Positions 6,488 through 40,125 of a stretch of DNA of 64,000 bases are shown piece by piece. The stretch is from sequence record MW760841.1, one strand, 5' to 3'. Position 1 is the stretch's first letter; the number at the start of each line of letters is the position of its first letter. The notes beneath the pieces are model-generated. The model made no database searches, was not told the origin of the DNA, and saw nothing but the letters and a program-made list of their open reading frames with translations. The position numbers and the translations under genes were made by a program.

Positions 6488-6499
6488 TGGAGTAATACC

Positions 6500-7945: not shown

Positions 7946-7955
7946 GGAGTAAGTG

Positions 7956-8954: not shown

Positions 8955-8957
8955 GTT

Positions 8958-9863: not shown

Positions 9864-9874
9864 CAGGAGACCAC

Positions 9875-11272: not shown

Positions 11273-11282
11273 GAGCTAGTCT

Positions 11283-12320: not shown

Positions 12321-12329
12321 GGAATCATT

Positions 12330-13214: not shown

Positions 13215-13225
13215 AGGAGAAAAAC

Positions 13226-14752: not shown

Positions 14753-14764
14753 GAGGACTTAAAC

Positions 14765-15748: not shown

Positions 15749-15757
15749 GGATAAGTC

Positions 15758-18992: not shown

Positions 18993-19703
18993 TCAGACGT
19001 TTAACATCGGAATCTGATTAACCGGTGGGTGCAACGGTTGAGACGGCCAGAACTTGTCTAAGGCGTTAATAGCACGCTTGATGTTCTGATAGCGCATGTT
19101 CACACATTTGCAGGTGGTGATGTCCCAATGCTCGTGTGACGGGATGGCTGGTTCGATATCGTTACGGAAGAACAGATAGTTACGTGCGTAATTCAACGTA
19201 ATGTCCGACACCGACGGATAGCGATACTGATGCGGGTCATCGTTCTTGTCCGCATACGACGGCCAACCAAAGTTACTGACGGCTTCGTAGAACGACTTGG
19301 CGATGAACTTATCCACGCCCATCATTTCCATAATCCGCAGGAACATCAAATCCGCAAACTCTTTGGTGGACGCCCGCGACAGATTTCCTTCCGGGGTGTC
19401 AGGATACGGCACCGGGGTTGGGGTCTTCTGATACAACATGTCATGGACACACGCCGCAGCAGCCCACGGGCCATCCGGATGCAGCATCGGTTGTAACACA
19501 GGCGGGATACTGGCCAGGTCGGTGACAAAGCCCGCTGGGACCGTGACATACATCTGCTTGTCCGGATGCACACCCGACTGGTACACCATCTCATCCATCC
19601 CCGGATGGTCACGGTACAACGTACGTAACGTGAACGGAATGTAGAAGTCTTCGGTTACGATGAACCACTGCTTCTCCAGCACTTTATATTTCAGCTCTAA
19701 CAT
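18993..19703 (-). CDS. DUF1353-family protein
   Basis: VPAGFVTDLASIP...AAACVHDMLY...ADLMF..IM..MGV motif set typical of DUF1353. Confidence 0.75.
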   Translation of the reverse strand: MLELKYKVLEKQWFIVTEDFYIPFTLRTLYRDHPGMDEMVYQSGVHPDKQMYVTVPAGFVTDLASIPPVLQPMLHPDGPWAAAACVHDMLYQKTPTPVPYPDTPEGNLSRASTKEFADLMFLRIMEMMGVDKFIAKSFYEAVSNFGWPSYADKNDDPHQYRYPSVSDITLNYARNYLFFRNDIEPAIPSHEHWDITTCKCVNMRYQNIKRAINALDKFWPSQPLHPPVNQIPMLNV

Positions 19704-20475: not shown

Positions 20476-20531
20476 ATATAGTTCCTCGTACGTTAATGAA
20501 TGTCATACGAAGCGTAAAAAAAATAAAGAGA

Positions 20532-20551
20532 GTGTGCCCCGAAGGGCACAC
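20532..20551 (-). terminator. Terminator closing the tail-fibre/radical-SAM unit
   Basis: GTGTGCCC-CGAA-GGGCACAC (UUCG loop on - strand) followed by a T-rich tract on the - strand. Confidence 0.8.
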
Positions 20552-20555
20552 CGTC

Positions 20556-21212
20556 TTACGCCAAGTTCTCTTCCTTGGCCATTGCCATCACCGCAGTGAA
20601 GTTATTCTGCTCAGCCAGCGTGCGAAGTTTTTGTTTCTTCACATTCAGCGCCATGTGCAGTTCGTTATCACGTTGGATAATCGCCGCATACAGCTCTTTC
20701 ACGTTTGACAGGTCAAACGGCTCGACTGGGGTGTTCATCGCATCAATCCAATACATCGGATCAACACCGGACTGGATATAGCCAGCCAGCGCTGTACGCG
20801 ATTTCTCGGTAGCCTGATAACGATGTTCACCAACCACGATGTCTTCGTAGCGCAGGTTTTCGTAACGGGTGTTTAACTCACCCAGAATACGGTTAAACTC
20901 ACGCCACAAATGCCCTACCGTGGACGCCAACCCTTTACGGATATCATCCAGCGGCAGTTCCAGTACATCGGCGATAAAGTCTTTGGTCTTCTTCATGATG
21001 AAGTTGACTTCGACATCTGACAGGTCGTAACCTTTCAACGCAGCCATTGCCGCTTTGTCGGTCATCCCGTTTAACAGATGGTAATGCAGCAGGGTACAGA
21101 ACCCCTGCTTGGTAGCATCTTCGGTACGGTGAATCGCCTGGTAATTGCCATGACGGTCAATTGGCGCACCCATTTCGAAGTAACGACGTTTTATTTCGTC
21201 ATTAGTAAGCAT
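20556..21212 (-). CDS. DUF4376-like protein (tail-fibre assembly associated)
   Basis: C-terminal half YQATEKSRTAL...YWIDAMNTPV..DL..VKELYAAI..R...H...KQ resembles the DUF4376 pattern; recognised by eye. Confidence 0.55.
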   Translation of the reverse strand: MLTNDEIKRRYFEMGAPIDRHGNYQAIHRTEDATKQGFCTLLHYHLLNGMTDKAAMAALKGYDLSDVEVNFIMKKTKDFIADVLELPLDDIRKGLASTVGHLWREFNRILGELNTRYENLRYEDIVVGEHRYQATEKSRTALAGYIQSGVDPMYWIDAMNTPVEPFDLSNVKELYAAIIQRDNELHMALNVKKQKLRTLAEQNNFTAVMAMAKEENLA

Positions 21213-21748
21213 TCATTCGCTCCTACCAGCCCCAGTTCCATTGCCAGCCCGAAGTCGAACATTTGGAAATCGACTTCTAACTCATCACCGAAGTGGAAGT
21301 TAAGCAGCTTGGCATCGTCCTGGTTCTGTTCCATGAAACTAAACATCATGTGCATCTCTTCCCCGAAGGCATCATACTGCTCCAGGGAACGACAGGCACG
21401 GACGCGAATCTCAGGCCAGTTCATGGCGAGACCCAGTAAGTTATCGGCATCCATATTGCGCGTAGAACGGCGCAGGATTTCGATTTTGTGGCGCGGGAAG
21501 GTTTTGATGCGTTCCTCGACACCGGGGTTACGCTTCTCCACTTCCTGCAACGAGAGATGACCACCTTCCAGACCGGACAGCGGAACAATCACGTTCAGCC
21601 CAAAGCGAACACACAGGGCTTCCACTTCCTTGGAGAAGTCTTCAGCCGGTACAATCGCGTGAACATTGTACAGCTTATGTTTACGGAGAAACAAGTCTAC
21701 CAGGTGAAGACTACGCTTCGTAAAATTGTGTATCAGCAGGGACTTCAT
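21191..21748 (-). CDS. Hypothetical protein (185 aa) in the radical SAM cluster
   Basis: Overlaps both neighbours (operonic); no recognised motif. Confidence 0.65.
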   Translation of the reverse strand: MKSLLIHNFTKRSLHLVDLFLRKHKLYNVHAIVPAEDFSKEVEALCVRFGLNVIVPLSGLEGGHLSLQEVEKRNPGVEERIKTFPRHKIEILRRSTRNMDADNLLGLAMNWPEIRVRACRSLEQYDAFGEEMHMMFSFMEQNQDDAKLLNFHFGDELEVDFQMFDFGLAMELGLVGANECLLMTK

Positions 21749-23051
21749 TCGCAGGTGCTCCTAATTGAGTTTTCTTTTCTGCCTCAGAGCGCGCACGTAC
21801 ACAGGATACGCAGTAGCACTGGGTCTTATCGTTCAGGTCGGTGTAGCGGATTGTGCCGGTCTTCTGATAGAAGTATTCGGCGACAAGCAGCTTAGCCGTC
21901 GTCCAACCACACTGGCGACGTTCGCCATGGTATTCGCGACGAGCTTCCAGTTCACCATCACCGTTTTCGTACGCCGCCGCAGCACAGCTACCACAGGCGT
22001 GTTTCATCGGGCAACCCAGGCAAGTTTCTGGGTAGTTGGTGTACTGCTTATTGATTTCACCTAACAGCTTACCGCCGTCGGTGTTCACAATCTCACGTCC
22101 CACTAACTCGCCAATGGCCTGGCGGGTGGTAACAGTTGACATGAAGCGGTTACAACCGTAAATCTTACGGTCGAAGCCCAGGCAGGTCATGTGCGTAACG
22201 GTACCGCAGAATGGACGCACACGCTCAGGGTCGAGACGGGTTGCTTCATCATCCAGCAGTTTCTGACGCCAATCCGGGTCCCACGTTGCCATGAAGTCCA
22301 GACCATCTGGGAAGATGTGAGTCAAACGGTTACGCGGGTCTTTCTGCAAGCCCTTCTCAAACCAGTAGTCAATCACGTCCATCATCTGGTTCGCGATTTC
22401 CAGCGCGGAGCTACGTGGCAGTACGTCTTCGTACGTTACGTTACCGGACAGGGTGCCACCGCCGGTGACGTCAATCAGGTGCTTCATCGACGCGCCGTAT
22501 TTCGGCAGCGTGTCAGCAGTAAAGGTGGCCTTCACACCCAGTTCGAGGATACCCACGGACTTGAGGTAGTTATAGCCTTTCATCGCCTTCTCGTACGACC
22601 CTTCACGCGTAGTGGTGAAGATACGGTACTTATCGTGCACTTCCGGCAGACCATCGATGGATACGCCGATAGACAGTCTGTCTTTCCAGCGTTCGATGAT
22701 TTCACGGTTCAACGGTTTGTCGAACAGCGTACCGTTCGTGGAGATAGAGAAGATGACATCACGCCCATCACGGGCGGCCAGTTCTTCTGCGGCTTCAAAC
22801 ACACCCAGCAGAATCTTCGGCTGCATCATTGGTTCACCACCGATGATGTCGATAATCACTTCCACGTTCGGGAGGTGACGGTCACGGTCGAAGCACGCAT
22901 GGATGAAGTCTACCGCATCCGCCACTTTGTTGTTACGCGGATACTTACGTTCGTAGCAATACTCACAGTCGAGATTGCACGACAGGTTGGTCACGACCTG
23001 ATAGGTCTTTGTGATTTTCGGCTCTACGGCCGGAATGAAACTATCGCGCAT
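21711..23051 (-). CDS. Radical SAM/SPASM peptide maturase (Cxxx-repeat target type)
   Basis: CNLDCEYC (CxxxCxxC), IIGGEP, ISTNGT, SIDG..HD..R; SPASM FCG..C..GC and CLGCPMKHACGSC...C. Confidence 0.92.
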   Translation of the reverse strand: MRDSFIPAVEPKITKTYQVVTNLSCNLDCEYCYERKYPRNNKVADAVDFIHACFDRDRHLPNVEVIIDIIGGEPMMQPKILLGVFEAAEELAARDGRDVIFSISTNGTLFDKPLNREIIERWKDRLSIGVSIDGLPEVHDKYRIFTTTREGSYEKAMKGYNYLKSVGILELGVKATFTADTLPKYGASMKHLIDVTGGGTLSGNVTYEDVLPRSSALEIANQMMDVIDYWFEKGLQKDPRNRLTHIFPDGLDFMATWDPDWRQKLLDDEATRLDPERVRPFCGTVTHMTCLGFDRKIYGCNRFMSTVTTRQAIGELVGREIVNTDGGKLLGEINKQYTNYPETCLGCPMKHACGSCAAAAYENGDGELEARREYHGERRQCGWTTAKLLVAEYFYQKTGTIRYTDLNDKTQCYCVSCVRARSEAEKKTQLGAPANEVPADTQFYEA

Positions 23052-23946
23052 TGTTTAGCCCCGCCTGAATAGTTCGATTGATGTACTTGTACGCGTCAAA
23101 GCCAATCACTTCGGCCAGACGGTTACACCCAGAGTCAATGGCATCAACTGCGTTCTGACTCTGCTCAAAAGTCGAATCCGACTTCACCCACACCAGGCTG
23201 CTGCAATCGTCACAATGCTGAGCGAAGAACTTATTGATGCTCAGGGGAATGTGTGAATCGTTGATACGATTCAGATAGGTCAGCTGCTCGTGCATTTTGT
23301 TGTAGCCGTACATGAAGTTCATTACATGGTCAGGCGACAGCGGTTTAGGCATGAAGTTATCGAACATCAAACGGAAGCCGTTAAACCCGTAGTGATACGT
23401 AGCGCGATGCAGTTCCAGTAAATCGTCCTGCCAGCGCTTATCACCCAGCTGCTCACGGGTTACGACAGACCACAGGCTCACATTGTTGAGAGCGTGCAGG
23501 GTATCAAACGCCTCAAAGCGACCTTCTTCTGCAATCCGCAGTAAAGGACGTTCTGATTTAGCGTACCCGTCAAACGAGACGAAGATACGGTCAAGCTGGG
23601 AGAGTAGCGGAAGCTGCTCAGGGCTCAGACGCAACGCGTTAGTGTACATCTCGTGTTGCAGGTGCGGGTAACGTTCTTTCAGTTCTGCCATGAACTCCTG
23701 GATTTTCTTGAAAGCCAACAGTGGCTCTCCGCCTGTCCAGTTAATCTGGCGGATTGACGGATGCTTTTCCAGCACCTCGAACAGTTTATCTTTCTGGATG
23801 TCGCGCGCAACGTCCTTGACATCCATATACCCCGCACCACCACAGAAGCTACAATCTAAGTTGCACTTCGAGGTGGTAACGATAGACAGTTCCATGGGAG
23901 TGTCTGTCGGGTCGCGACGAATGGCCGACACAGCTTCTTCACTCAT
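23041..23946 (-). CDS. Second radical SAM enzyme (301 aa, short C-terminal Cys motif)
   Basis: CNLDCSFC, WTGGEPLL, MYTNA, VSFDG; C-terminal CDDC...GC. Confidence 0.88.
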   Translation of the reverse strand: MSEEAVSAIRRDPTDTPMELSIVTTSKCNLDCSFCGGAGYMDVKDVARDIQKDKLFEVLEKHPSIRQINWTGGEPLLAFKKIQEFMAELKERYPHLQHEMYTNALRLSPEQLPLLSQLDRIFVSFDGYAKSERPLLRIAEEGRFEAFDTLHALNNVSLWSVVTREQLGDKRWQDDLLELHRATYHYGFNGFRLMFDNFMPKPLSPDHVMNFMYGYNKMHEQLTYLNRINDSHIPLSINKFFAQHCDDCSSLVWVKSDSTFEQSQNAVDAIDSGCNRLAEVIGFDAYKYINRTIQAGLNNAR

Positions 23947-23967
23947 TGCAGGTTTACTCCAGTATTT

Positions 23968-24855
23968 TTATTCGAATGTCAGTGCAAACAGTGGGTCTTC
24001 TTTGATGTCCACACCCTGCTTCAATACGAAGGGGTCGTGGTAAGCAGCAAGAATCTTGTTCAGCACTTCATGACGCTCGTTAATGCGTTCCAGGTCATCG
24101 AGAGTAACCTTACGTTCCAGGATTGCACTAGCGGCCACTTGCTCTTCAACGCTCAGGTCAACCTTCTGCATTAAGAAGCTCACCAGCTTCGTTAAGTCTG
24201 CTTCGGTTCCCGGCGCTTCACCGTACTTCCACTGCACCAGATACTGCATCCACGGTTTGCGGATACGTTTGGTGATTTCGTGTTCGTCAGTGATAGCAAC
24301 GAATTTCTTTTCCGCGTGCAGCCATTTAAACTTATAGCTGAATGCTAAGAGGTCGAGCATCTTGTGGATGCCCAGGCTTTCGTAGCCTTCGATTGGGTAA
24401 TAGATTTCTACCCCTTCGTAATGCTCGGTGTCCGCAGGCACTTGCGAATACCAGAACGGCAGGGAACTCGGGTAGTCCCAGCTCCATTCACGACGCACCA
24501 TTGGCTTGAGGCCGGTTTCAGCAAACGGAGTCAACAGCATTTCCAGATCGCCACACTGGTTCAGCACACCGTCGCTGAAGAAGTATTTACGGTCAATGAA
24601 CTTGCCGTTGATTTCCTGCTCGCCGGTGTTCAGGTAGATATGCTCAACCTTGTGCCCAGCCAACATGTAATCGTTCAGCACTTCGAAGTTCTTCGGATTG
24701 ATTAACTCACGCCCACGCACCTTCGGCCATTCAGCAGGCAACTGCGTAATCAACAGGATTTCGCCTGTCAAGTGATACTTTACGCTGTCGTAAATACTGA
24801 CTTGTAACGGAAAGTTCTGCGTTGTGCGGAACGCAAGGTGCATATCGTTCTTCAT
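23968..24855 (-). CDS. Hypothetical protein (295 aa) between the peptides and the radical SAM genes
   Basis: GGGGAG RBS, tight spacing, long ORF; no recognised family. Confidence 0.7.
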   Translation of the reverse strand: MKNDMHLAFRTTQNFPLQVSIYDSVKYHLTGEILLITQLPAEWPKVRGRELINPKNFEVLNDYMLAGHKVEHIYLNTGEQEINGKFIDRKYFFSDGVLNQCGDLEMLLTPFAETGLKPMVRREWSWDYPSSLPFWYSQVPADTEHYEGVEIYYPIEGYESLGIHKMLDLLAFSYKFKWLHAEKKFVAITDEHEITKRIRKPWMQYLVQWKYGEAPGTEADLTKLVSFLMQKVDLSVEEQVAASAILERKVTLDDLERINERHEVLNKILAAYHDPFVLKQGVDIKEDPLFALTFE

Positions 24856-24867
24856 TTAAAACTCCCC

Positions 24868-25074
24868 TTAGCGGTTTCCTGCGCCGTGACTACAGCCGCC
24901 GCTGCACGTCCAGCTGCAAGAGCCACCACAATTGTAATGCGATAATGGGAGACCCGCCAGGTTGTTGGTGGTGCTTACCGTGCCACTGTTACGAATGTAA
25001 TCGTTCGCATCGTCGGTACGGATATAGCCTTCCACTTGCGCCAGCTTGTCTCTGACAAGTTTAAGTGATATCAC
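24868..25074 (-). CDS. Cys-rich peptide 3 (68 aa, 4 Cys; GTG start at 25074)
   Basis: MISLKLVRDKLAQVE matches the peptide 1 leader; core CGGSCSWTCSGGCS; GGGGG RBS-like run upstream. Confidence 0.75.
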   Translation of the reverse strand: MISLKLVRDKLAQVEGYIRTDDANDYIRNSGTVSTTNNLAGLPLSHYNCGGSCSWTCSGGCSHGAGNR

Positions 25075-25121
25075 AGTAACCCCCAAGTGTGTAAAAAAGA
25101 TGACGAGGGTCGGCTACACTG

Positions 25122-25517
25122 TTAGCGCATCGGTCCAGAGCATCCTGAGCAACCGGAGCAGCTTGAGCTGCACGATGAACTACAACCGCCTGTACAAGTG
25201 CCCGAGCAACCGCTAGAACAGCTACCAGAACAGCCTGAACAGCCCGTACACGTCGACGAACAGCCTGACGTACAACTCGCAGAGCAACTGGCCCCACAAG
25301 TTCCTGATGCCGAGCCTGAGCATCCGCCGGAGCATGAGGAGCAGCTCCAACTACAGGTACCACCGCAGTCATAGTGTTCACGGGAGAAACCCCCGAAGCG
25401 CTGTGAGTTGTTGGTGCCTTTGTTGCGGATGTAGGTTTGCACACCGGCTGTGTTCTTCAATGACGCTGCATCGATAGCATTAAGCCGGTTTTGAATATCT
25501 TTAAGGTTGATTGCCAT
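25122..25517 (-). CDS. Cys-rich (Cxxx)n precursor peptide 2 (131 aa, 20 Cys)
   Basis: 50-aa Cys-free leader + 81-aa core made almost entirely of C/S/G/T; GGGGA RBS. Confidence 0.88.
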   Translation of the reverse strand: MAINLKDIQNRLNAIDAASLKNTAGVQTYIRNKGTNNSQRFGGFSREHYDCGGTCSWSCSSCSGGCSGSASGTCGASCSASCTSGCSSTCTGCSGCSGSCSSGCSGTCTGGCSSSCSSSCSGCSGCSGPMR

Positions 25518-25526
25518 GTTTTTCCC

Positions 25527-25910
25527 CTACGGCCCCGAACAGCCGGAACAGCCACCGCAGCCGGAACCACAGGAACCAGAACAGCCGCTACATTTACCAG
25601 AGCAGCTACCAGAGCAACTCCCGGAACAACCGGAACAACCTGAACAGCCGGTAGAACACCCGCCTGTACATGCACCGGTACACGTTGAGGTACAAGTACC
25701 CGAACAACTCGTACACGATGCGGAACAACCATTAGAGCACGACCAGCTACACGTTCCACCACAATCCAACTGAGCAGGCGTCCAACCAGCGAAGCGATCC
25801 GCTGCGTTAAAAGCCCCTGATGCTACTTGGGCATCAACCCGAGGTCCAGTTGCGTAAGTGTTCTCCACGCTTTGCAGGCGGTCGCGTACGTTTTTTAATG
25901 AGATTGCCAT
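25527..25910 (-). CDS. Cys-rich (Cxxx)n precursor peptide 1 (127 aa, 21 Cys)
   Basis: 49-aa Cys-free leader + 78-aa core of Cxxx/Cxx units; AAGGA RBS. Confidence 0.88.
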   Translation of the reverse strand: MAISLKNVRDRLQSVENTYATGPRVDAQVASGAFNAADRFAGWTPAQLDCGGTCSWSCSNGCSASCTSCSGTCTSTCTGACTGGCSTGCSGCSGCSGSCSGSCSGKCSGCSGSCGSGCGGCSGCSGP

Positions 25911-25972
25911 ACGTTTCCTTTAATAAATAAGGGAGGACACTGCCATATAGACAGGTCCTCGCGTAAAGAGAC

Positions 25973-27178
25973 TTATTTGGTACCTGCTTCCGCCTGTACG
26001 TCGTCGCGAGATGTGAGGCTCGAGTTGACGTGTACCGCAGCTTGTACAACACCGCCGTACTGTTTGTGGAGGTATTTCGGGTGCGGGTTATCGGCGTTGA
26101 TGTGGTTCGTCAGGTTCTGAGACACCGTCGAGATACCCGAGGTGTTATTCGCAACCTGCTGTTTCAACGCGGTCAAATCCTGTTGCAACTGCTGAATCTG
26201 CTGCTGGGTATCCTGGCCTGAGTTTTCCAGGTCAGTGACACGCTGATTCAACCCGGCAATCACCTGATTCTGGTCAGTGACCATCTTCTGGAGTTGCGCG
26301 ACCAGGTCGTTCAGATTCGCCATCTGCAACGCCATACGCTGATAGTTCTGCGCCACTGCGTTCAGCTGATCATTCCAGGAACCCAGAGCCGCGACAATCG
26401 CGTCGATGCGTTGGTTGATAGCCGTGTCTGCCGCTTTCAGATCCCCAATGTCTGCAAGGACAGCGTTAATCGCCGTTTGCACACCTTGAATCAAAGCACG
26501 GATTTCGGTTTCCGTCAGACCGTTGGCCTGATGGATATCCAGACTGTGAACGTTACCTTGAGCGTTGATGTGATTATTCAGTGCAGCCATAAACTGCGTC
26601 TGCATATTCTCAATCAACGATTTCAGCTGTTCAAGCTGGACCGTGTTCCCGGCGTTGATGCTATCCTTGATACCTGCCAGTTCAGTGATGATGTATTCAA
26701 AACCGAAGATGTCGCCGATGTCTTTAAAGGACGGAGCAGCCGCAAAAGTATCTGGAACGTTACGCAGGTCTTTGAAGTCGACCACCCGGTCATCGAGGTT
26801 CGCATCAATAATCGCTTGCTTAATCGCAGCAATCACCGCTGACTGTGGACCACCGACAACCTGGGTAGAGGCAATGACGTCTGTCGGGATGGCGCTGTTT
26901 GTGACAACGACCGCCATACAGACTTCTTTGTTACCGGCAAGTTTTTGGTAAACGGGATGGGCAAAGATTAACTCGTAATCCACCCCACGTTTGTAGGTCG
27001 TGTTAGGCGCATTCGCGGGACGCAGTTTAAAGTCATCTGCGTAGAACGGCCCTGCTGGAAAGGCAAACGCACGGTTTACTTTCCCACCACCCAACACAAT
27101 AGGAATGCTGACGGCATTGCTCGTCATCTTCCCCGTCAAGTCGAGCGGGTACTGAAATAAAATATCTGGCATGGCCAA
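25973..27178 (-). CDS. Tail-fibre-family protein with long coiled coil (401 aa)
   Basis: N-terminal YPLDLTG..SN..GPFY..GVDYEL domain shared with the three long fibres; heptad-rich Q/L segment; HINADNPHP. Confidence 0.72.
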   Translation of the reverse strand: MAMPDILFQYPLDLTGKMTSNAVSIPIVLGGGKVNRAFAFPAGPFYADDFKLRPANAPNTTYKRGVDYELIFAHPVYQKLAGNKEVCMAVVVTNSAIPTDVIASTQVVGGPQSAVIAAIKQAIIDANLDDRVVDFKDLRNVPDTFAAAPSFKDIGDIFGFEYIITELAGIKDSINAGNTVQLEQLKSLIENMQTQFMAALNNHINAQGNVHSLDIHQANGLTETEIRALIQGVQTAINAVLADIGDLKAADTAINQRIDAIVAALGSWNDQLNAVAQNYQRMALQMANLNDLVAQLQKMVTDQNQVIAGLNQRVTDLENSGQDTQQQIQQLQQDLTALKQQVANNTSGISTVSQNLTNHINADNPHPKYLHKQYGGVVQAAVHVNSSLTSRDDVQAEAGTK

Positions 27179-27210
27179 ACTCCCTTATCAGGACATCCTT
27201 GTCCCCGTGT

Positions 27211-32229: not shown

Positions 32230-32260
32230 GAATAACACTCCTGCTCTTAAATAAAACGGA

Positions 32261-32313
32261 TACCGCCCCCGAAAGGGCGGTAGCTTGCGGACTAAGCACG
32301 CCCGCAAGCGTGC
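32261..32313 (-). terminator. Double stem-loop between tail-fibre genes
   Basis: TACCGCCC/GGGCGGTA and GCACGC/GCGTGC stems; weak T-tract. Confidence 0.5.
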
Positions 32314-32317
32314 CGTC

Positions 32318-35300
32318 CTATGCCCAACCGCCGAAGTCTGTACCGTCAGTTTGACGTTCAGTATCCATACGGTCTAACAACCAATTCCACATCTTCTCGG
32401 TCATGTGGAACGGGTTCTGTCGTACCATCATGTAACGCTTACCGGTGGAGAACAACTGCACCGGACTAGCCTGGGTCAATGTCTCCAACTCAACACTGGC
32501 GTTCGTGTAAGTCTTCAACGTGAACTCAAGTTTCAGATCGGTACGCAATGTGGATGGAGGTGTGAATTCCAGGAATACTGGACTTCCGCCAACCCAGTGG
32601 GAGTTATTCACCATCACCTCGATGACTTGTGGTGTGGTGTTATCCGGTGAGGCGGTCCAGGAACCCACGGCAATGCCTGTAGAGGCGTGCCATATTTTCC
32701 CAGCATACGTCGAACTGATAGTCAGCTTCATGCTGTACGGTGCCACATCATCACGCAGCTTTAACATGGCCGTAATGTTCGACAGGTGTGCTGCTTGCCC
32801 ACCGCTGGTTGCGTTCCAGGCTGAGAACCATTTCATTCCCGCAGCCAGCTTCAACGGTGAACCCTGACGCTGGTCACCTTGACAGAACGCAGATGGGAGG
32901 AACCCATCATGCGAACGTCCCACCGTACCACTGTCACCCGGCAAGGAAATCCATTCGGTTGACAGCAGCTCATCCGGCACCAAAGACGTTACGGTGTTGA
33001 ATGTGGTGTTCGTGCCACCGGTCAACGTCAAGGCATCCGCATCCACATACGACTCAAACAGCGAGCGGTAATAGTGGTACTTACTGTCGTCAAAGCCTGC
33101 TGAGGATAAATCCATCAGCGACGGTAATCCGACATAGCCCTCGGCAATACCGGTGGCGACCGGGCGTTGCACACCCACGAACCCTGAGAGATAATGGTGG
33201 AATTCGATATCGAACTTCACTTCAATCTCAGTGCAGTTGATGCTTTCTTGGGAACCATCGAAGAACAGCTGGAACACTCGCAGCACACGCGTATGGCAAT
33301 CGTAGCGATAACGAATGACGTAACGCGGGAACTGCTTCTTCAATGACACCAAGTCCAGCGCCGCAGCGCCGTCAGCGATATTCCCAGACCGCAGCACCGA
33401 CACGGTACACGGAGCATCCATTAACTGGAACTCTGGCATCGTTGCACGGACAGTGGAGTTTGTTGTCAAGGTTTTAGCGAAACCAATCTTTGGTTTCTGC
33501 AACCCATCAACACGCCACACCATCACGCGGTTACGGCGGTAGGAATAATCCGCACCGGCGGCATCGATTGCCCCCGCGAACACCAAATCAAACCCAGGGT
33601 GTGGCGCGTAGGTCGTCCTGAACATCCCGGTCGCAGCGATAGTGAAGCCGCCTTCGATAGTGGTGTGCCCGTCGGCTTTCGGGTTAAACGGCGTTACCCA
33701 GCGGAGTGGGGACTGTTCTTTCGCTTCCCATAAGGCCAGGAACGGAACGTCACCATTACCGCCAAACGTCATCATCCCTTTGTTGTTAACCCCGAGTGAG
33801 GCAATCTCACCGTAGACAGCACACCCTAACTCGAAACGCATTCTCCCCATCGGCACCATGGCTGGGTTGTCAGACAACTTCCAGTCGGCTTTCTGTGGTT
33901 TATGCGCATCCACCAGGGCTGCGTGATCGGAGAGTTCTTTCGCCATCCCGAAGTCAAACGTTTTCGGGAACGAGACAGACGATACCGTGAGGCCACCTGT
34001 CGGTAAATCCACGTAGCCAATCAACGCGTGCTCGATGTCGATATCCTGCGACTCCACCGGTTCCGCACGGCTGTAGATAGAGCCGGTAATCATGTTCAGG
34101 TACAGGTAATGACGCAAGCCATCGGCCTGGGTCACAAACTCTTGCAGCTGAGCAATTGGCTTACCCACATCGGAACGCACCAATGGCGCTTTCCCATCCC
34201 AGATTTCGTACATCATGCTGGCCGGTTTGGCCACGTCGGTACAGTCGGCACGAATTGCTACCGTGTGGGCGGTACCGTCATCGTTATCAAACTGCACGTT
34301 CACGTAGGCCGGGGAGTTCGCGGCGATTTTCTCGACACCGTCGACATACACCGTCACCTTACCACCGGCTGCCACATAGATGTCCAGTTTCCCGGTGTGG
34401 GTGACCACCCGTTCTTTCGACAGGATGGAAACCACCGACAGGTCACCCATCTGTCCCACGGTTTTCCCGACAGGTACAGCCAGTAACGGCAAGGCCGGTT
34501 GGTTCGAGATACCCGTCCACGCCAGTGTGCCGTTGGTGACGGACTTAGGCCAAGTACGCTCCATGGCATTGTACGGACTGAACCACTGGAACATCGGGGT
34601 CGTTTGCAGGTCAATCGTCCCGCTGACGACACCCGACTTCTTCTCGCCTTGTGACAGGTAGAAGTAGTCCATGTCCTGTACCGTTAACCCACGCTTCGTC
34701 CCCGTGACTGTCCAGGTGGAAGCGTCGACCGCAGCGAAGTCGGTAGAAGCACCGGTCTTCACGTCCGATACGGCGGCGGCCACGATATCTAAACGGTCAC
34801 TCAACGCTTTGAGCAGGTTAGGAGCCACACCCTTCTGGGAAGCCAGGCCGTCTTCTAACGACGTGTACCGGGCAATCCCTTTCTGGTTGTTGGACGCTAA
34901 CGGCAACAGCAGCTCATCCCAGGCGTGCTTGTGTCCCTTGATTGACAGTTCATCAAGGTCAACTTGCTGTTCCTGGGAAATCGGCTTATCCAGGTCTTTG
35001 GTGTTATCCACGTTACCCAGACCAATATCGGCTTTCACCAAGGTACGGGAACCGGTGTCCATTGCCCCGGAGTTAATCATGGTGGTCTTCGGTACGTACC
35101 CGCTGGCCTTACCTTCGTACGGCGTCAGTGACGCAGGCGTTGAGGCGAGGTTCGTTTCTGGCCCTGGGCCAGTTTTCAGCTTGGTAATCCCTTTGACCGT
35201 GGTGGAGGCCACCGGCGGGGTCAGGGTACCTTTAACCGGGTCAGCTCGAGAACCTTTACCGGTAAAGGACAGGCCATTACGACCTTGCACCCAAAGCTTG

Positions 35301-36412
35301 TTATCATCCGGGTCGGTGTTACCGCCCTCACTGCCATCTGACTGGTATTCCAGTAACAGGTTGGTGGTGAGCAGCACACGATCGTTCAAGGTCAACTTGT
35401 CCATCCCCAGCGCAGAACCCGAAGATTCAATACGCAGGGTGTTGACCCCCGACTTCCACTCCATGAACCGCACTGTGGCTGCTTCATCGTAACCGGCAGA
35501 CAGGATCACCGAACCGTTGGTCTTAATCGTGAACGCCGTATCCGTGAAGGTAATCTCGGAGGTGCCCGATTTCGACTTGAACAGCTGACGGTTAGCCGCC
35601 AGGGTTTGCACAAACACCCCGTTGACATCTTTACAGGCCCACTTCTCGATATAGTTATCGATATCGCTCTGCTGGAGGCCCAAGGCACGGATTTCAGCCG
35701 TCAGGGTACGTAAGGTCTTCCCGTAGGCTAAGAACGTGTCAGGGGTCTTCAGGTTCGCAGGATGGGCACCGGTCTGGGCACCGGTAATGTCGTGCGCTTT
35801 GTGTTCCGCAATGTGGGCCGGGTAGTTGAACGCCGCAATCTCGGTCTGGAGACCTTCGACGGTGGTTTTCAGGGCAGCGAGTTTGTCACGAATCAAATCG
35901 TTAGCCGCACCCGCATCCAGTTCCACATCACGTACCGCAGACGCCAGATACTTTTTGTTCAGCAGGTCAGCCCAACTGGTTGCCGCCGGTTTCGCCGGAT
36001 ACAAGGTTGGACGACCATCGAGTTTTAACCAATCCACATCGACCGGGTTGTTCAGATACTTCACCAAATCATCGAGCATGTCAATGAACGGTGAGTAGAA
36101 CGTATCCCCTAGCGTTTGACCGGTAATCTCCAGTGCCCCACCAATCAGTGGGTTCAACAGCTGGACACCGCAGAATACCGGGGAGGCTACCGAGTCTTCG
36201 AGTTCAGGCAACTGATACGCCAGTTGATAGTCAACCCCCAAGGTCAGGGGGTTGGTGCTACCGGCCGCTGTCACCACGAGACCCGTACCGAAGAACGGGC
36301 GGTGTTTGAGCATGAGAACCCGGTTTTCCGGGTCATCACTGTCTACCAGCCAATCTTCATGGAACGCGTTCTCAGGATTGGTACCCTTCCAGTCGTAAGG
36401 ATACGATTTCAT
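32318..36412 (-). CDS. Long tail fibre protein (1364 aa)
   Basis: YPYDWKGTNPEN..PFFG..LGVDY, ADIGLGNVDNT, HKH..LAS..KGI; GGAG RBS. Confidence 0.8.
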   Translation of the reverse strand: MKSYPYDWKGTNPENAFHEDWLVDSDDPENRVLMLKHRPFFGTGLVVTAAGSTNPLTLGVDYQLAYQLPELEDSVASPVFCGVQLLNPLIGGALEITGQTLGDTFYSPFIDMLDDLVKYLNNPVDVDWLKLDGRPTLYPAKPAATSWADLLNKKYLASAVRDVELDAGAANDLIRDKLAALKTTVEGLQTEIAAFNYPAHIAEHKAHDITGAQTGAHPANLKTPDTFLAYGKTLRTLTAEIRALGLQQSDIDNYIEKWACKDVNGVFVQTLAANRQLFKSKSGTSEITFTDTAFTIKTNGSVILSAGYDEAATVRFMEWKSGVNTLRIESSGSALGMDKLTLNDRVLLTTNLLLEYQSDGSEGGNTDPDDNKLWVQGRNGLSFTGKGSRADPVKGTLTPPVASTTVKGITKLKTGPGPETNLASTPASLTPYEGKASGYVPKTTMINSGAMDTGSRTLVKADIGLGNVDNTKDLDKPISQEQQVDLDELSIKGHKHAWDELLLPLASNNQKGIARYTSLEDGLASQKGVAPNLLKALSDRLDIVAAAVSDVKTGASTDFAAVDASTWTVTGTKRGLTVQDMDYFYLSQGEKKSGVVSGTIDLQTTPMFQWFSPYNAMERTWPKSVTNGTLAWTGISNQPALPLLAVPVGKTVGQMGDLSVVSILSKERVVTHTGKLDIYVAAGGKVTVYVDGVEKIAANSPAYVNVQFDNDDGTAHTVAIRADCTDVAKPASMMYEIWDGKAPLVRSDVGKPIAQLQEFVTQADGLRHYLYLNMITGSIYSRAEPVESQDIDIEHALIGYVDLPTGGLTVSSVSFPKTFDFGMAKELSDHAALVDAHKPQKADWKLSDNPAMVPMGRMRFELGCAVYGEIASLGVNNKGMMTFGGNGDVPFLALWEAKEQSPLRWVTPFNPKADGHTTIEGGFTIAATGMFRTTYAPHPGFDLVFAGAIDAAGADYSYRRNRVMVWRVDGLQKPKIGFAKTLTTNSTVRATMPEFQLMDAPCTVSVLRSGNIADGAAALDLVSLKKQFPRYVIRYRYDCHTRVLRVFQLFFDGSQESINCTEIEVKFDIEFHHYLSGFVGVQRPVATGIAEGYVGLPSLMDLSSAGFDDSKYHYYRSLFESYVDADALTLTGGTNTTFNTVTSLVPDELLSTEWISLPGDSGTVGRSHDGFLPSAFCQGDQRQGSPLKLAAGMKWFSAWNATSGGQAAHLSNITAMLKLRDDVAPYSMKLTISSTYAGKIWHASTGIAVGSWTASPDNTTPQVIEVMVNNSHWVGGSPVFLEFTPPSTLRTDLKLEFTLKTYTNASVELETLTQASPVQLFSTGKRYMMVRQNPFHMTEKMWNWLLDRMDTERQTDGTDFGGWA

Positions 36413-36423
36413 TTATACTCTCC

Positions 36424-39400
36424 TTAATCACGCACTACCACAGCGGTGTAGTTCACACCGTCGCTGTAGGTCGCTAAGCGGTCTTTGTTCAGATAATCAG
36501 GAACCCCATCTGGACGCTTGGCAGCCGAAGCGAGGTCCTTTGCAGCCGCAGCTGTACGAACATCGGTATTCGACAGCTTGGTTGCAGAAGGTGCGGTGAT
36601 AACGCGAATACGGTTCATCTCAGAAATGTTCTGGATGTAATCGAACGCGGTTTCATAACCCGGACGTGGAGTGAAGGTAGCCATTTCGTACGACAGTCCG
36701 ACCGTCGTGTCCGCGTCTAACGTGCCACCGATGCCGTGATACACGGGCCAGGTGATATCGTTAACCAACGGCGAGATGTCAATTTGTGCAGCGGTCAGGT
36801 ATGGTGCCAGGTCGTAAATTTCGGTGACTGCTGCCGCCCCGTAGGTACGCCAGAAGGTCACTTTCTTCCCGACCAGGTCTACCGCGAAGCTAAACCCATA
36901 AGGGCTAACATTCACCGTACCGGTAATCTGCAACGCCCCATTACCTACACGACCTAAGTTGAAGGTCACGAGCGGTGTGATGCTGTTCCAGTTCGCTGCC
37001 GTAGTAAACGAGGAAGCGTTAATACCGATTAACACCTGACGCATGGTGCCGTAGTTGATAGCAAAGCCCAGGTAACACAACATCCCTTCACTGCCGGTAA
37101 TGTTGTTGGTGCGCTGCATCAGCAGAGAGATGCGATTGCGGCGACCTTTACTGTCTTCCCAGGAGGCCATCACCACTTCGAATACCGACGCTGCTGTGTC
37201 CACCGACGACGTAAAGGCCGCGATGATGTTGCCTGAGGTTCTGATCGGGCACTGGTGAATCAGGTGGCGGTGGTTTGCTACCCCAGTAGCCGTCTTTCTC
37301 AGCAACAGGCTCGACGCGTTGTTCCAGTCCACGTTCTCCATTGGAACATAGTCCGGCCCTTTCAGCATACGCCAGTCACCGTCAAAACGACGAGTACCCA
37401 CAACCGCGTTGTTCCATACCGGCCCATCCTTCGTAAAGGTATAACCGAATTGGGCTTGCGTTGGTCCGCGTGGAATATGCGCGCTGACATCAGCGGCGTG
37501 TTCTTCCAACTCACGGAACGCACCAAGGCGCGTGGTATTGCGAACGGACAGCCCGGAGATTTGGGTTTCATCGGTATAGATTTCACCGACCCGCGTCAGG
37601 GTTTCCGTTTCTGCAAAGGCCACGTTGTCCTTTAACACGTATTGCGCGTTGTCGCCCACGAGGTCGACGAAAATACCAATCACAGTATCTTCATGCGTCA
37701 CCGGGAACAACTCTGCCAGGTTAAAGGTTGCGGTCGGTACCGGGTAGTCTTTCTTCACGAAGTAGTTATTCGGATTCAGCACTACCATCCAGCCATTATA
37801 GCTGGCCCCGTTCATCACTTCGCTGTTACCGGATGCGCCAAAGCGCAGGATATCGATAATCGCTTCGGTGTTGGAGTTGTTTACCGTGTCCTCGAGTTTC
37901 TCCACCGCATCAAACTGCCCCACCACGTACTGCCCGTCTAACGCCAGTGTGGCGTCATTGACCAAGCCCCCGAATTGTACCAGTCCGGCTTTTGCCGTCG
38001 TGGCATTACCAATCCCGAAGGTTGCTGCATCATGGGTATGGCCGTTCTTCGCATACTTCGCCATTTCTTGACGTTGTAGGCTAGAGGTCGGTAAAGAGAG
38101 GTCAGCAATGTTTTCCACGCCGTCCAGGTTGAAGCTGGTTTTATCCAACGACACGGATGACATCAGGGACAGGCCGTTGATGTACGCTTTGGCCTGTTCC
38201 AGTTTACCGGTGAACTCGTTCGCCAGTTTCTGAATCAGAGCGGGAGTAGCCGCCAGAGAATCTGACGTACCAAACTCCGTGGTCAGCATACGCATCGCCA
38301 ACGCGGCTGTATCAACGTCGTCCGGTGCAACCCAGGTAAAGATAAACGGCATAGACTGAATACCGCTACCTGTCACCGTAACTGTTGTGGTGCTGGAACC
38401 GTAGAAGATCCCGGAACCTCCACCCTCGTTACCCGGTAAATAAGGCGCGATGGTGGTCGGGTCAAGAATCTTCTTACCGTTCCATTGCAGCTCACGCGCA
38501 TCCGGGTACAACACCAGCGCATTCGCGCCCGCATTGAAAGTAATAGGCTGACTGCCTGCACTGATGGTTGATGAGCCACGCGCAATCAAGCGCACCACTT
38601 TATCATCCACTTGCAGGTTAGTCCCCACCCCTGAGGCTTCGGTGTCTTTGGCTGAGGTAATAGAAGACAAACCCGGCAGCATGGTAAACGTGCCCGTAAT
38701 CGTACGCGGGGTCGCTGTCTTCCTGAGCATCTTGTCAGAGAAGTCAGTGGCCTTCGCACTACGCTGGTTCACGTAATCCGCTAACTGTGGCTGTGTCTTA
38801 CCAAACGCCAAGGTGGCGTCATCGGCAATCCCGTTCAGCTCGATAGCCCGCATCCGACCGTAAGACTGGTCGCCGTGTGGGTTGTCTTTACGCAGGATGT
38901 GTGGGTGTGCTGGCGCTTCACGGTATAGCTTGTCAACGAGGCTATGATATTTTTTCAGCAATGACAGAACATCAGAGCCGTCCGGGGTACCCGCATTCGC
39001 ACCAGGGATTTCCTGGAATGAGAACGTATCGTTCACCCCGACGGGGAACCAATAACGAATATCGGTTGTGCGCTTTGATAGCCGTGAGGCAATCCCATCC
39101 GCTGCCCAAACAGCAGACAGTACAGCAGGCGGGTTTGCAAAATCCAACGTCGTGTCCAGGAGCACCGCACCGTCTTGTTCCACTTTAATGGAGATGGTGT
39201 CATTCGTCCAGCTGTTAACCACCGTCACTTTGAACGGTTTAGCGAACAACGCTTTTCCGATAACCGCAGAAGATGCGAATGTGGTTTCCGTGGTCGGCCT
39301 GGAACTCGGCGAACTGTACAACAGCGCCTGTAGCTTGTCATCTTTAAATAACAAGTGAATACCGGCAAAGCCGCTACCCCAGAAGTTACGCAGGGAAAGT

Positions 39401-40125
39401 CGGAAATCCGGTGTCGCTGCGATGGACTGGGATGGAAGATTTAAAGTCATGACGACTTTATAATCCGACAACCGATTACTGGTGCCCTGGATGATGTAAA
39501 ACGCGGAGGTCGGTTTCTTTTTGAATATCCAACTGGCGTCATTACGGTACAGTATTTCACCGCGACTGTAATTCCCTTCGTGCCCAGTAAAGCTGTACGT
39601 GTTGTTGATGATTGGATCGGGAACCGGAGGAAGTTCGGTTATCTTTTTACCGATATCCACGATAGCCTGCATCAGCTCACGTTCACCCTTCCAGTTCTCC
39701 CAGTCAAACTGGATATCCACTGGCGGGAAGTACACATCACCGATGGCATCTTCCCACTGGCAATCACTTGGGTATTTGTTCGCGTTAGCCAAGCGCTCAG
39801 CAGTAATCTGGGCTGGGGTCGCAATGCCCTTGCCCACGTAGTGTGCAGTGACTTTAAAATCGGTGGTGTATTTCGGGTTAACAATCCAAATCATCCCGTG
39901 TACCGAACGGCCAGTGCGCAACGTGCCAGTCATGTACGGATGGGTAATCAGATAGTCGTTACCGAGTTTTAAAACGGTAGAGCCGCTCTTCACGACCAGA
40001 GAATGGGAGTAAAAAGGGCCGTTAGAAGGTACCAGCATTCGGTACTTGGTGCCGATAACCGAGACCGCTTGATCGGGGATTAAATTCCCCGCGATGTTCT
40101 CATGCGGGTCAAATTCGACTGCCAT
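36424..40125 (-). CDS. Long tail fibre protein (1233 aa)
   Basis: PSNGPFY..LGNDY, DNPHG, HTH..NAT..AGLVQF; AAGGAG RBS. Confidence 0.8.
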   Translation of the reverse strand: MAVEFDPHENIAGNLIPDQAVSVIGTKYRMLVPSNGPFYSHSLVVKSGSTVLKLGNDYLITHPYMTGTLRTGRSVHGMIWIVNPKYTTDFKVTAHYVGKGIATPAQITAERLANANKYPSDCQWEDAIGDVYFPPVDIQFDWENWKGERELMQAIVDIGKKITELPPVPDPIINNTYSFTGHEGNYSRGEILYRNDASWIFKKKPTSAFYIIQGTSNRLSDYKVVMTLNLPSQSIAATPDFRLSLRNFWGSGFAGIHLLFKDDKLQALLYSSPSSRPTTETTFASSAVIGKALFAKPFKVTVVNSWTNDTISIKVEQDGAVLLDTTLDFANPPAVLSAVWAADGIASRLSKRTTDIRYWFPVGVNDTFSFQEIPGANAGTPDGSDVLSLLKKYHSLVDKLYREAPAHPHILRKDNPHGDQSYGRMRAIELNGIADDATLAFGKTQPQLADYVNQRSAKATDFSDKMLRKTATPRTITGTFTMLPGLSSITSAKDTEASGVGTNLQVDDKVVRLIARGSSTISAGSQPITFNAGANALVLYPDARELQWNGKKILDPTTIAPYLPGNEGGGSGIFYGSSTTTVTVTGSGIQSMPFIFTWVAPDDVDTAALAMRMLTTEFGTSDSLAATPALIQKLANEFTGKLEQAKAYINGLSLMSSVSLDKTSFNLDGVENIADLSLPTSSLQRQEMAKYAKNGHTHDAATFGIGNATTAKAGLVQFGGLVNDATLALDGQYVVGQFDAVEKLEDTVNNSNTEAIIDILRFGASGNSEVMNGASYNGWMVVLNPNNYFVKKDYPVPTATFNLAELFPVTHEDTVIGIFVDLVGDNAQYVLKDNVAFAETETLTRVGEIYTDETQISGLSVRNTTRLGAFRELEEHAADVSAHIPRGPTQAQFGYTFTKDGPVWNNAVVGTRRFDGDWRMLKGPDYVPMENVDWNNASSLLLRKTATGVANHRHLIHQCPIRTSGNIIAAFTSSVDTAASVFEVVMASWEDSKGRRNRISLLMQRTNNITGSEGMLCYLGFAINYGTMRQVLIGINASSFTTAANWNSITPLVTFNLGRVGNGALQITGTVNVSPYGFSFAVDLVGKKVTFWRTYGAAAVTEIYDLAPYLTAAQIDISPLVNDITWPVYHGIGGTLDADTTVGLSYEMATFTPRPGYETAFDYIQNISEMNRIRVITAPSATKLSNTDVRTAAAAKDLASAAKRPDGVPDYLNKDRLATYSDGVNYTAVVVRD

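Follow-up and report, generated by a model that had tools for sequence, protein, structure and literature searches.

The window that we analysed, a 64,000-nucleotide stretch of sequence record MW760841.1 (Erwinia jumbo phage pEa_SNUABM_4/8, SPN3US-like), contains between positions 40125 and 20556 a block of 12 co-directional genes, all on the minus strand, that starts with a large fibre/baseplate gene and ends at the stop codon of a DUF4376 gene. In order of transcription, the block and its terminator comprise:

36424-40125, minus strand: large virion fibre/baseplate paralogue (1233 aa), orthologue of SPN3US gp170, matching phrog_7557 at full length
32318-36412, minus strand: large virion fibre/baseplate paralogue (1364 aa), orthologue of SPN3US gp169, matching phrog_8078 at full length, with weak hits to tail fibre and minor tail PHROGs
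27211-32229, minus strand: large virion fibre/baseplate paralogue (1672 aa; the ORF is open up to 32307), orthologue of SPN3US gp168, matching phrog_7449 at full length
25973-27178, minus strand: gp167-like coiled-coil fibre protein (401 aa; phrog_2163)
25527-25910, minus strand: CXXX-repeat protein p1 (127 aa: 49-aa N-terminal part and 78-aa core with 21 Cys; phrog_6085)
25122-25517, minus strand: CXXX-repeat protein p2 (131 aa, 20 Cys; phrog_6085)
24868-25086, minus strand: short CXXX protein p3 (about 67-72 aa, 4 Cys; non-ATG start, exact start uncertain; phrog_6085)
23968-24855, minus strand: gp165-like protein of unknown function (295 aa; phrog_8030)
23041-23946, minus strand: radical SAM enzyme 2, rSAM2 (301 aa), whose stop overlaps the start of rSAM1
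21711-23051, minus strand: radical SAM/SPASM enzyme 1, rSAM1 (446 aa)
21191-21748, minus strand: gp162-like protein of unknown function (185 aa; phrog_7988 only), overlapping both neighbours
20556-21212, minus strand: DUF4376 protein (218 aa; PF14301 at 40.4 bits against a cutoff of 25)
20531-20552, minus strand: terminator-like hairpin (9-bp stem, 6 GC pairs, T-rich tail) just after the DUF4376 stop

The hairpin is the only strong minus-strand terminator between 40125 and 20531 and the genes overlap or abut, which suggests, together with their fixed order, that the block is one co-transcribed operon, probably expressed late. A sigma-70 promoter scan retrieved fewer sites than in shuffled sequences and is uninformative for phages that use their own RNA polymerases. 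The order fibres, gp167-like, three peptides, gp165-like, rSAM2, rSAM1 is fixed in five genera. By contrast, the gp162-like and DUF4376 genes were found only in jumbo-phage loci, and the DUF4376 protein shows no similarity to the last gene of the corresponding module in L009 (we number the loci of other phages carrying relatives of these genes L009, L010, and so on).

The three large proteins share an N-terminal domain with each other and with the gp167-like protein, as shown by cross-hits among phrog_7557, 8078, 7449, and 2163. The "four fibre genes" of the sequence-only reading of this DNA are actually three giant paralogues plus a 401-aa coiled-coil fibre protein. Their SPN3US orthologues, gp167-gp170, are virion proteins by mass spectrometry and were called "baseplate/tail fiber candidates" (Ali 2017, PMC5694885), and SPN3US gp168 is a tail protein similar to phiKZ gp131, which lies at the baseplate periphery (PMC5105663). 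The gp167-like protein consists of the shared N-terminal attachment domain, a coiled coil of roughly 200 aa, and a nearly invariant C-terminal stretch of about 45 aa, the most conserved part of its distal half. The full-length form occurs in 62 phage records, about the same set as the cassette formed by the peptides and the radical SAM enzymes. Only the SPN3US-like Enterobacterales phages have the full-length protein together with this cassette, phiKZ-like phages sharing only the N-terminal roughly 210 aa.

The three small cysteine-rich ORFs are real genes. Both long ones have strong Shine-Dalgarno sequences, their counts of 21, 20, and 4 Cys are conserved in five genera, and core dN/dS values are 0.06-0.14 (0.06-0.13 for p1), with 20/20 or 21/21 Cys conserved where synonymous sites are near saturation. 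The spacer between consecutive Cys is of 3 residues in 81% and of 2 residues in 17% of 292 intervals, the residues in between are small, and none of the 19 cores analysed contains Asp or Glu. DNA tandem repeats in the peptide genes were limited to two weak 9-nt arrays, so this is not a recent repeat expansion. The N-terminal motif noticed in the sequence-only reading (ISLKxVRDRLxxVE) is present in p1 and p3 and, as a variant, in p2, although its "coiled-coil-like" character amounts only to a roughly 17-residue amphipathic helix with a two-heptad pattern. AlphaFold2, run on p1 with a 17-sequence alignment, predicts a helix at residues 5-21 (pLDDT about 72) but gives no fold for the core (pLDDT 32-40), and a CXXX profile found no hit among PDB sequences. 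A profile of the N-terminal "leader" retrieved only the three peptides among all window ORFs, so the leader has no detectable similarity to gp167-170.

Both enzymes belong to the radical SAM superfamily (PF04055 at 52.7 bits for rSAM1 and 52.4 bits for rSAM2, against a cutoff of 29.5), and the CX3CX2C motif is visible in both. In rSAM1, the cluster residues C25, C29, and C32 are invariant in 22 relatives. Of the seven Cys expected for the two auxiliary 4Fe-4S clusters of a SPASM domain, C282, C300, C344, C347, C353, and C356 are invariant and C381 is at least 90% conserved, although the Pfam SPASM model itself did not hit. The best NCBIfam matches of rSAM1 are the PapB ranthipeptide maturase (NF047865; 126.4 bits, 1.4e-36) and TIGR04115, the CXXX-repeat maturase (114.4 bits, 8e-33), both near full length but far below the curated cutoffs of 340 and 350 bits, respectively, as for every other named maturase family. 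The rSAM1 family profile matches residues 98-428 of CteB (PDB 5WGG; E 5.7e-36), presumably a thioether-forming enzyme although the PDB entry is labelled only "Radical SAM domain protein", and this match runs through the SPASM region. rSAM1 lacks the N-terminal 97 residues of CteB and, with them, the N-terminal recognition domain. For rSAM2, the best PDB hit is SkfB (6EFN), a thioether former, and C245, C248, and C274 of a C-terminal CX2C...GC motif, inferred to hold a twitch-like auxiliary cluster, are conserved in 10 homologues.

The gp165-like protein is specific to the cassette, its homologues following the CXXX protein in L009, L011, L012, L016, and L018, and only 42 clusters match it among 1.84 billion representatives. 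Searches for gp165-like patterns in GTDB genomes confirmed nothing. Its AlphaFold2 model is confident (pLDDT 87), but a Foldseek search found no relative in PDB (best E 0.48) or in BFVD apart from its own orthologue, and a PqqD-like recognition fold could not be shown. Neither the gp165-like nor the gp162-like protein has PDB relatives by sequence.

The closest known systems are the Cys-Xaa-Xaa-Xaa repeat radical SAM targets (TIGR04117 and TIGR04114) with their TIGR04115 maturase, catalogued by comparative genomics and apparently uncharacterised in function. They share with the phage proteins a Cys at every fourth position, small residues in between, and an adjacent rSAM/SPASM enzyme, and the core start "C.GSCSW.C" is found also in the Bacteroidales members P0155, P0157, and P0158, two of which (P0157 and P0158) came back as weak hits in a large protein search. 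Nevertheless, p2 scores only 15.4 and 14.5 bits against the respective cutoffs of 50 and 20, and p1 and p3 give no hit. Moreover, the bacterial members are twin-arginine-signal proteins of roughly 100 aa, so the domain is not intrinsically a fibre part, whereas the phage members have a fibre-type N-terminal part or are whole tail fibres, sit in tail modules and, in the "CSW" subfamily, come with gp165-like and a second rSAM. Compared with the CteB/SCIFF and PapB/freyrasin systems, with which they share the type of maturase and a substrate with repeated Cys, the phage cores are 2-4 times longer, with 20-23 Cys, there is no export or processing machinery, and the genomic context is structural. 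The PapB-type acceptor, probably an Asp or Glu in a Cys-X3-Asp/Glu motif, is absent from the phage cores.

The strongest evidence about the role of these proteins comes from unrelated phages, in which the same Cys ladder and its pre-core junction (the "..LxG.....Y.C.G.CSW.C" motif) form the C-terminal domain of genuine tail-fibre proteins. In L012, the protein encoded at 7231-8529 has collagen repeats (E 2e-21), hits the tail-fibre family phrog_5073 (6.5e-52), and ends in the "CSW" ladder. In L009 and L018, fibre-like proteins with PTR/HxH repeats, encoded by the third gene after GpJ, end in the ladder as well. In these three loci the ladder protein is followed by homologues of gp165 and both radical SAM enzymes. 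L022, L023, and L024, which carry gp165-like and rSAM1 relatives, encode proteins that hit T7-type, tail-collar, or other tail-fibre PHROG families (E 1e-55 to 1e-9, including phrog_327 at 9.8e-55 in L022 and phrog_2631 at 2.7e-32 in L023) and end in the ladder. L014 is a T7-like podovirus with the CXXX protein in the fibre slot followed by an rSAM, and L027, L034, and L035 show the order baseplate wedge, tail fibre (in L034), CXXX protein, and rSAM. The peptides of the window align to these fibres from about 15 residues before the first Cys, with p3 aligning to the fibre junction in L009, L012, and L014, and the fibre proteins hit the peptide family phrog_6085 from profile positions 2-23 onward, so that the "leader" is included. 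The pairing is general in viral contigs: 76 of 80 IMG/VR loci with an rSAM1 relative have a same-strand CXXX ORF, against 3 of 80 loci from bacterial species genomes.

These data support the main inference of the sequence-only reading, namely that the modified peptides are structural fibre-tip or baseplate parts rather than secreted bacteriocins. That reading had also noted the lack of a transporter, protease, or immunity gene. Indeed, none of the 12 products hits an ABC transporter, C39 peptidase, or immunity family in Pfam, NCBIfam, or PHROGs, although "no protease" holds only for this cluster since these phages encode a prohead protease elsewhere (PMC5694885). A classical RiPP, with modified cores freed from the leader and released at lysis as antibacterial or signalling molecules, would not need a transporter, and the leader-plus-core layout, the three precursor paralogues, the RiPP-type rSAM/SPASM enzymes, an endolysin gene just downstream, and the bacterial cousins, which are exported small proteins, would fit it. 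However, we consider this possibility unlikely because cores of 78-92 residues with 20-23 Cys are unlike known ranthipeptides or sactipeptides, no leader protease or cleavage motif is apparent (no convincing prohead-protease-type A-x-E site was seen in the leaders by eye), the "leader" is homologous to an internal fibre segment, the same domain is covalently part of tail fibres of 250-450 aa, and the cassette sits in tail modules of many phage types.

An intracellular function during infection, such as metal or redox buffering, an Fe-S or sulfur reservoir for the enzymes, or anti-defence, appears very unlikely. It finds some support in L016, a relative whose rSAM1 is 50% identical and in which the cassette lies not beside fibres but beside small non-structural-looking genes, including an Acb2/Tad1-hairpin-like gene. 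Against it stand the fixed synteny with fibres in five genera, the fusions to fibres, and the rSAM-CXXX pairing in viral contigs. Furthermore, every non-jumbo locus whose context could be read lay in a tail module, two others (L010 and the P0089 contig) being uninformative.

In SPN3US virions, gp167-170 are present whereas the enzymes, gp165, gp162, and gp161 are absent, which fits maturation factors acting on structural parts. As for the peptides themselves, SPN3US and other records mis-annotate or omit them, so that the published SPN3US virion proteomes, which searched an annotation lacking them, could not have detected them, and no direct evidence places p1-p3 in any virion. The absence of gp165, gp162, and gp161 would also be compatible with an assembly-only role, in which the CXXX proteins and gp165-like act as chaperones or scaffolds for folding or trimerising the giant fibres without being retained in the virion. 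The position of the cassette after the fibre gene, where fibre assembly proteins probably tend to lie (see L034), and the DUF4376 and DUF1353 "tail assembly chaperone" neighbours point in the same direction. Nevertheless, this alternative also seems improbable, since in the fused versions the ladder is the fibre's own C-terminus, with no recognisable self-cleaving domain, heavy enzymatic modification of a discarded chaperone seems costly, and the strict conservation of 21 and 20 Cys suggests a defined final structure.

We therefore favour, with a likelihood only somewhat better than even, the hypothesis that the three peptides are free-standing versions of a C-terminal tail-fibre tip domain, each with a short amphipathic helix, a fibre-type junction, and a ladder of Cys at every fourth residue, although in the jumbo phages the ladder is not fused to a fibre and the fusion argument is by homology. 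In this model, rSAM1 and rSAM2 work in the cytoplasm, with gp165-like standing in for the recognition domain that rSAM1 lacks, perhaps as a substrate-recognition or chaperone factor, to convert the roughly 20 cysteines of each long core into intramolecular sulfur-to-carbon crosslinks, giving a rigid rod resistant to proteases and to redox changes. The matured proteins would then be mounted on the fibre apparatus, most likely on the conserved C-terminus of the gp167-like fibre encoded immediately upstream. The thioether chemistry is inferred from enzyme similarity, and a structural role with a different chemistry, in which the ladder is held by metal-thiolate centres or disulfides and the enzymes catalyse, for example, epimerisation, Cys/Ser oxidation to formylglycine, or C-C crosslinks, is a less likely alternative. 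Consistent with it, the core has 25% Cys at a regular period, the second-best structural relative of rSAM1 is the anaerobic sulfatase maturase 4K37, rSAM2 has weak hits to many chemistries, and the L009 fibre combines HxH repeats with the ladder. However, the best full-length matches of rSAM1 are thioether-forming maturases, as is the best PDB hit of rSAM2.

In the literature we found no description of this cassette, the only tangential observation being that pelagimyophage "host recognition clusters" differ by radical SAM cassettes (PMC7029224). Covalent or metal reinforcements of exposed virion parts, such as the HK97 capsid "chainmail" isopeptide bonds and the metal-binding HxH repeats of T4-type fibre tips, offer an analogy, and the L009 and L018 fibres do carry His-x-His repeats upstream of the ladder, but those reinforcements are likely autocatalytic or based on simple metal binding, whereas here dedicated radical SAM enzymes are encoded beside the fibre gene. 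It is about as likely as not that such enzymes crosslink a cysteine-ladder domain at the tip of tail fibres in myo-, sipho-, and podovirus-type phages, with at least 203 loci in IMG/VR, and that in SPN3US-like jumbo phages the tip is split off as three separate small proteins, possibly a heterotrimer docking on gp167. This would be, to our knowledge, the first case of a virion structural protein matured by radical SAM chemistry, linking RiPP enzymology to phage adsorption machinery, and a thioether-laddered rod would be a new kind of protease- and redox-resistant protein material. It would also give a function to the uncharacterised CXXX-repeat/rSAM systems and to a conserved six-gene block in SPN3US, a genetic model for giant phages, in whose reference annotation, as in those of several relatives, three strongly conserved genes are missing or mis-framed, so that existing virion proteome data can be re-read at once. 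Since the cassette lies in host-recognition regions, it may matter for how fibres survive harsh environments such as plant surfaces or the gut.

The segment 20556-27300 is 100% identical to the Erwinia jumbo phages pEa_SNUABM_4 and pEa_SNUABM_8, 92% identical to ChrisDB, and 75-83% identical to Caitlin, Stratton, Asesino, and phiEaH2, all of which are SPN3US-like giant myoviruses of Enterobacterales. Between 40125 and 20556, twelve genes lie head to tail on the minus strand, in this order, followed by a terminator-like hairpin:

three giant paralogues of 1233, 1364, and 1672 aa, minus strand
a 401-aa coiled-coil protein (gp167-like) that shares the N-terminal domain of the giant paralogues according to PHROG cross-hits, minus strand
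three Cys-rich ORFs (p1, p2, and p3), minus strand
a 295-aa protein of unknown function (gp165-like), minus strand
two PF04055 radical SAM proteins (rSAM2, then rSAM1), minus strand
a 185-aa protein of unknown function (gp162-like), minus strand
a DUF4376 protein, minus strand
20552-20531, the only strong minus-strand terminator-like hairpin, right after the last stop

The SPN3US orthologues gp167-gp170 were found in virions and called baseplate/tail-fibre candidates (PMC5694885), and gp168 resembles phiKZ gp131, which lies at the baseplate periphery (PMC5105663). None of the twelve products hits a transporter, peptidase, or immunity family. Since the genes abut or overlap and the only strong terminator-like hairpin follows the last stop, co-transcription is likely, although inferred. 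The description given by the sequence-only reading, a RiPP-like cluster placed inside the tail-fibre module without recognizable transporter, protease, or immunity gene, stands. Just downstream of the operon, beyond the endolysin, lies a DUF1353 protein annotated as “tail assembly chaperone” (18993-19703); a DUF1353 gene also sits two genes after a distant rSAM1 homologue in an unrelated contig (that of P0089) rich in glycosyltransferases. Just upstream, the plus strand carries a striking paralogue array (3159-16660) composed of four tandem copies of a three-gene unit (459/334/309, 481/333/301, 465/345/294, and 508/327/300 aa) with a further similar set before it, annotated in ChrisDB as virion structural proteins. 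Farther away, an 836-aa ORF (50601-53111, plus strand) coincides with the only strong positive GC-skew peak of the window (0.10-0.15, against about 0 elsewhere).

The peptides are real genes that have been overlooked. p1 (127 aa), p2 (131 aa), and p3 (about 70 aa) share one architecture, with a roughly 50-residue N-terminal part followed by a core that starts with a “C.G.CSW.C” motif. The long cores have 21 and 20 Cys, respectively, and p3 has 4. The Cys counts (about 20-23 in the long cores, 4 in p3) and the position of the first Cys (residue 47-51) hold, with minor variation in the most distant genera, in Machinavirus, Erskinevirus, Seoulvirus, Derbicusvirus, and Wellingtonvirus. Spacers between Cys are 3 residues long in 81% of the intervals and 2 residues long in 17%, and the core is composed of 30% Ser, 26% Gly, 25% Cys, and 8% Thr, with no Asp or Glu. 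p2 (25122-25517) and its orthologues have one conserved 7-residue gap in the Cys ladder, where a Cys position is occupied by Ala; it sits at the same place in four of the five genera compared, whereas CR5 and Kwan keep a Cys there. Each long peptide has a strong Shine-Dalgarno sequence, and the core dN/dS is 0.06-0.14 where synonymous divergence is about 1-2, with all 20-21 Cys conserved.

Reference annotations nevertheless miss or mis-frame these genes. In SPN3US (L003, JN641803) none of the three (8829-9221, 8414-8818, and 8192-8398, minus strand) is annotated, and the annotated gp166 (8410-8745) is an Ala/Val-rich ORF in another frame over the real p2. ChrisDB, Asesino, CR5, and Kwan also carry wrong-strand or wrong-frame ORFs here (L001 24961-25218, L004 4398-4982, L006 4377-4589, and L007 4608-4985 in these related phage records), ChrisDB gp188 and others being on the wrong strand, and most SPN3US-like records annotate nothing under the tblastn hits. 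The published SPN3US virion list jumps from gp160 to gp167. The absence of the peptides from that list therefore says nothing, whereas the absence of gp161-gp165, which were annotated, does indicate that the enzymes and accessory proteins are not virion parts.

The best NCBIfam matches of rSAM1 (446 aa) are near full length: the PapB ranthipeptide maturase model (1.4e-36, 126 bits) and TIGR04115, “radical SAM peptide maturase, CXXX-repeat target family” (8e-33, 114 bits), although both are far below the curated cutoffs. A profile of 22 relatives matches CteB (5WGG) at E 5.7e-36 over CteB residues 98-428, the next match being the anaerobic sulfatase maturase. CX3CX2C and seven C-terminal Cys are invariant or nearly so, which makes this a SPASM enzyme, but it lacks the N-terminal recognition domain of CteB. 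rSAM2 (301 aa) is a shorter paralogue belonging to the same PHROG; its best PDB hit is SkfB and it has a conserved CX2C...GC motif. On the substrate side, p2 weakly hits the Cys-Xaa-Xaa-Xaa repeat radical SAM target models, and named members of that family from Bacteroidales (P0155, P0157, and P0158) were recovered in a large protein search. These bacterial proteins carry a twin-arginine-type signal, and are therefore exported, presumably after cytoplasmic modification, and start their cores with the same “C.GSCSW.C” motif. The enzyme-substrate pairing is thus of a known, catalogued kind, although uncharacterized as far as we could find.

The decisive evidence is comparative. More distant rSAM1 homologues (30-39% identity) lie in quite different phages, where in each case the cassette is in the tail module and the Cys ladder is usually the C-terminal domain of a real fibre protein. 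In the loci L009/L008 and L018 (the latter a prophage in GCA_049472655.1), DUF2460, tail_L, NlpC/P60, and GpJ are followed by two short genes of unknown function and then by a 258- or 302-aa protein with fibre-type His-x-His/PTR repeats that ends in a junction plus a ladder of 11 (L009) and 29 (L018) Cys; next come a gp165-like protein (E 3e-14 to the window protein) and two or three rSAMs. L009 also encodes, inside its tail module and right after a 601-aa fibre-like protein, a 180-aa protein (12876-13418) with a thrombospondin type-1 (TSP1_ADAMTS) domain (E 4.9e-13). In locus L012, a 432-aa protein with collagen triple-helix repeats (2e-21) and a strong tail-fibre PHROG hit (6.5e-52) ends in the ladder and is followed by gp165-like and two rSAMs. 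In loci L022, L023, and L024, proteins of 384-451 aa hit tail fibre, tail collar fibre, or minor tail PHROGs (E 1e-55 to 1e-9) and end in the ladder. The T7-like podovirus L014 runs connector, capsid, tube, nozzle, and T7-tail-fibre N-domain, then a 132-aa ORF, a 213-aa CXXX protein, and an rSAM, whereas in L013 and L015 Cys-rich proteins and an rSAM lie at the distal end of siphovirus-type tail modules. In L011 the form is split, with a 607-aa fibre, then an uncalled 79-aa CXXX ORF (8017-8256) starting one base after its stop in another frame, then gp165-like and two rSAMs. A second subfamily, with a “GC..C(S/T)GLC” junction, a single rSAM, and no gp165-like, lies after the baseplate wedge and (in L034) tail-fibre genes in L027, L034, and L035. 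Viral proteins of about 810-830 aa in L065, L070, L074-L077, and L080-L082 (e.g., L070 3621-6104) have the reverse layout, with an N-terminal Cys ladder followed by a roughly 600-aa C-terminal part hitting phrog_1589, 5811, and 7388 (unknown function), and lie next to an rSAM1 relative.

Quantitatively, 76 of 80 IMG/VR loci carrying an rSAM1 relative have a same-strand CXXX ORF, nearly always 0.5-3 kb upstream. By contrast, among the 80 best loci from bacterial species genomes only 3 do, and there the best identity is 28% or less. The window peptides align with the fused fibres from about 15 residues before the first Cys, and the fused fibres hit the peptide PHROG from profile positions 2-23. 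The so-called leader is therefore homologous to an internal helix-plus-junction segment of fibres. An alternative would be a RiPP released at lysis, and the bacterial cousins are indeed exported small proteins, but the fused architectures argue most strongly against a free secreted product. One relative, L016 (rSAM1 50% identical), does not fit the fibre-module rule: this jumbo-like contig carries the whole cassette (8600-13677; three peptides, gp165-like, two rSAMs, and gp162-like) away from fibre genes, beside small genes including an Acb2/Tad1-hairpin-like one. Assembly-only and intracellular roles were also considered as rivals.

In the absence of virion data for the peptides themselves, those of the jumbo phages are best read as a tail-fibre tip domain that has been split from its shaft, the gene order, shaft then ladder, matching that of the fused and L011 forms. 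The gene immediately upstream, gp167-like, whose SPN3US orthologue was found in virions, encodes a protein with an attachment domain and a long coiled coil but no distal domain. Its full-length form occurs in 62 phage records, about the same set that has the peptides (61 records) and rSAM1 (65 records), whereas other phiKZ-like phages share only its N-terminal half. Its last roughly 45 residues are nearly invariant across five genera, more conserved than the coiled coil. We therefore propose, as an inference, that matured p1-p3 dock on the gp167 C-terminus; the existence of three non-redundant paralogues hints at a heterotrimer. The role of gp165-like is also inferred. It belongs to a rare family (42 clusters in 1.84 billion representatives), is confined to the “CSW” subfamily, is absent from the SPN3US virion list, and has a confidently predicted but unmatched fold. 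Because rSAM1 lacks a recognition domain, a substrate-presenting or chaperone role is the simplest guess.

The proposed chemistry, thioether crosslinks from Cys to neighbouring Ser, Thr, or Gly carbons, rests only on the enzyme relationships, and a structural role with metal-thiolate or other chemistry is a rival possibility. AlphaFold2 models only the N-terminal helix (residues 5-21, pLDDT about 72) and gives nothing for the core. This is what one would expect if the core needs crosslinks, partners, or metal to fold, but it proves nothing.

The system works like a CXXX-repeat/SPASM RiPP system and is related to it, but it falls below the curated cutoffs for TIGR04115, PapB, TIGR04117, and TIGR04114, and lacks both the PapB acceptor residue and the CteB recognition domain. 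We found no description of it in the literature, the only tangent being a remark that radical SAM cassettes vary within pelagimyophage host-recognition clusters. Three aspects are new, namely its placement in, and fusion to, tail fibres across many phage types, the gp165-like partner, and the split three-peptide form in SPN3US-like phages. It is about as likely as not that it represents a new category, the enzyme-installed radical crosslinking of a virion organelle.
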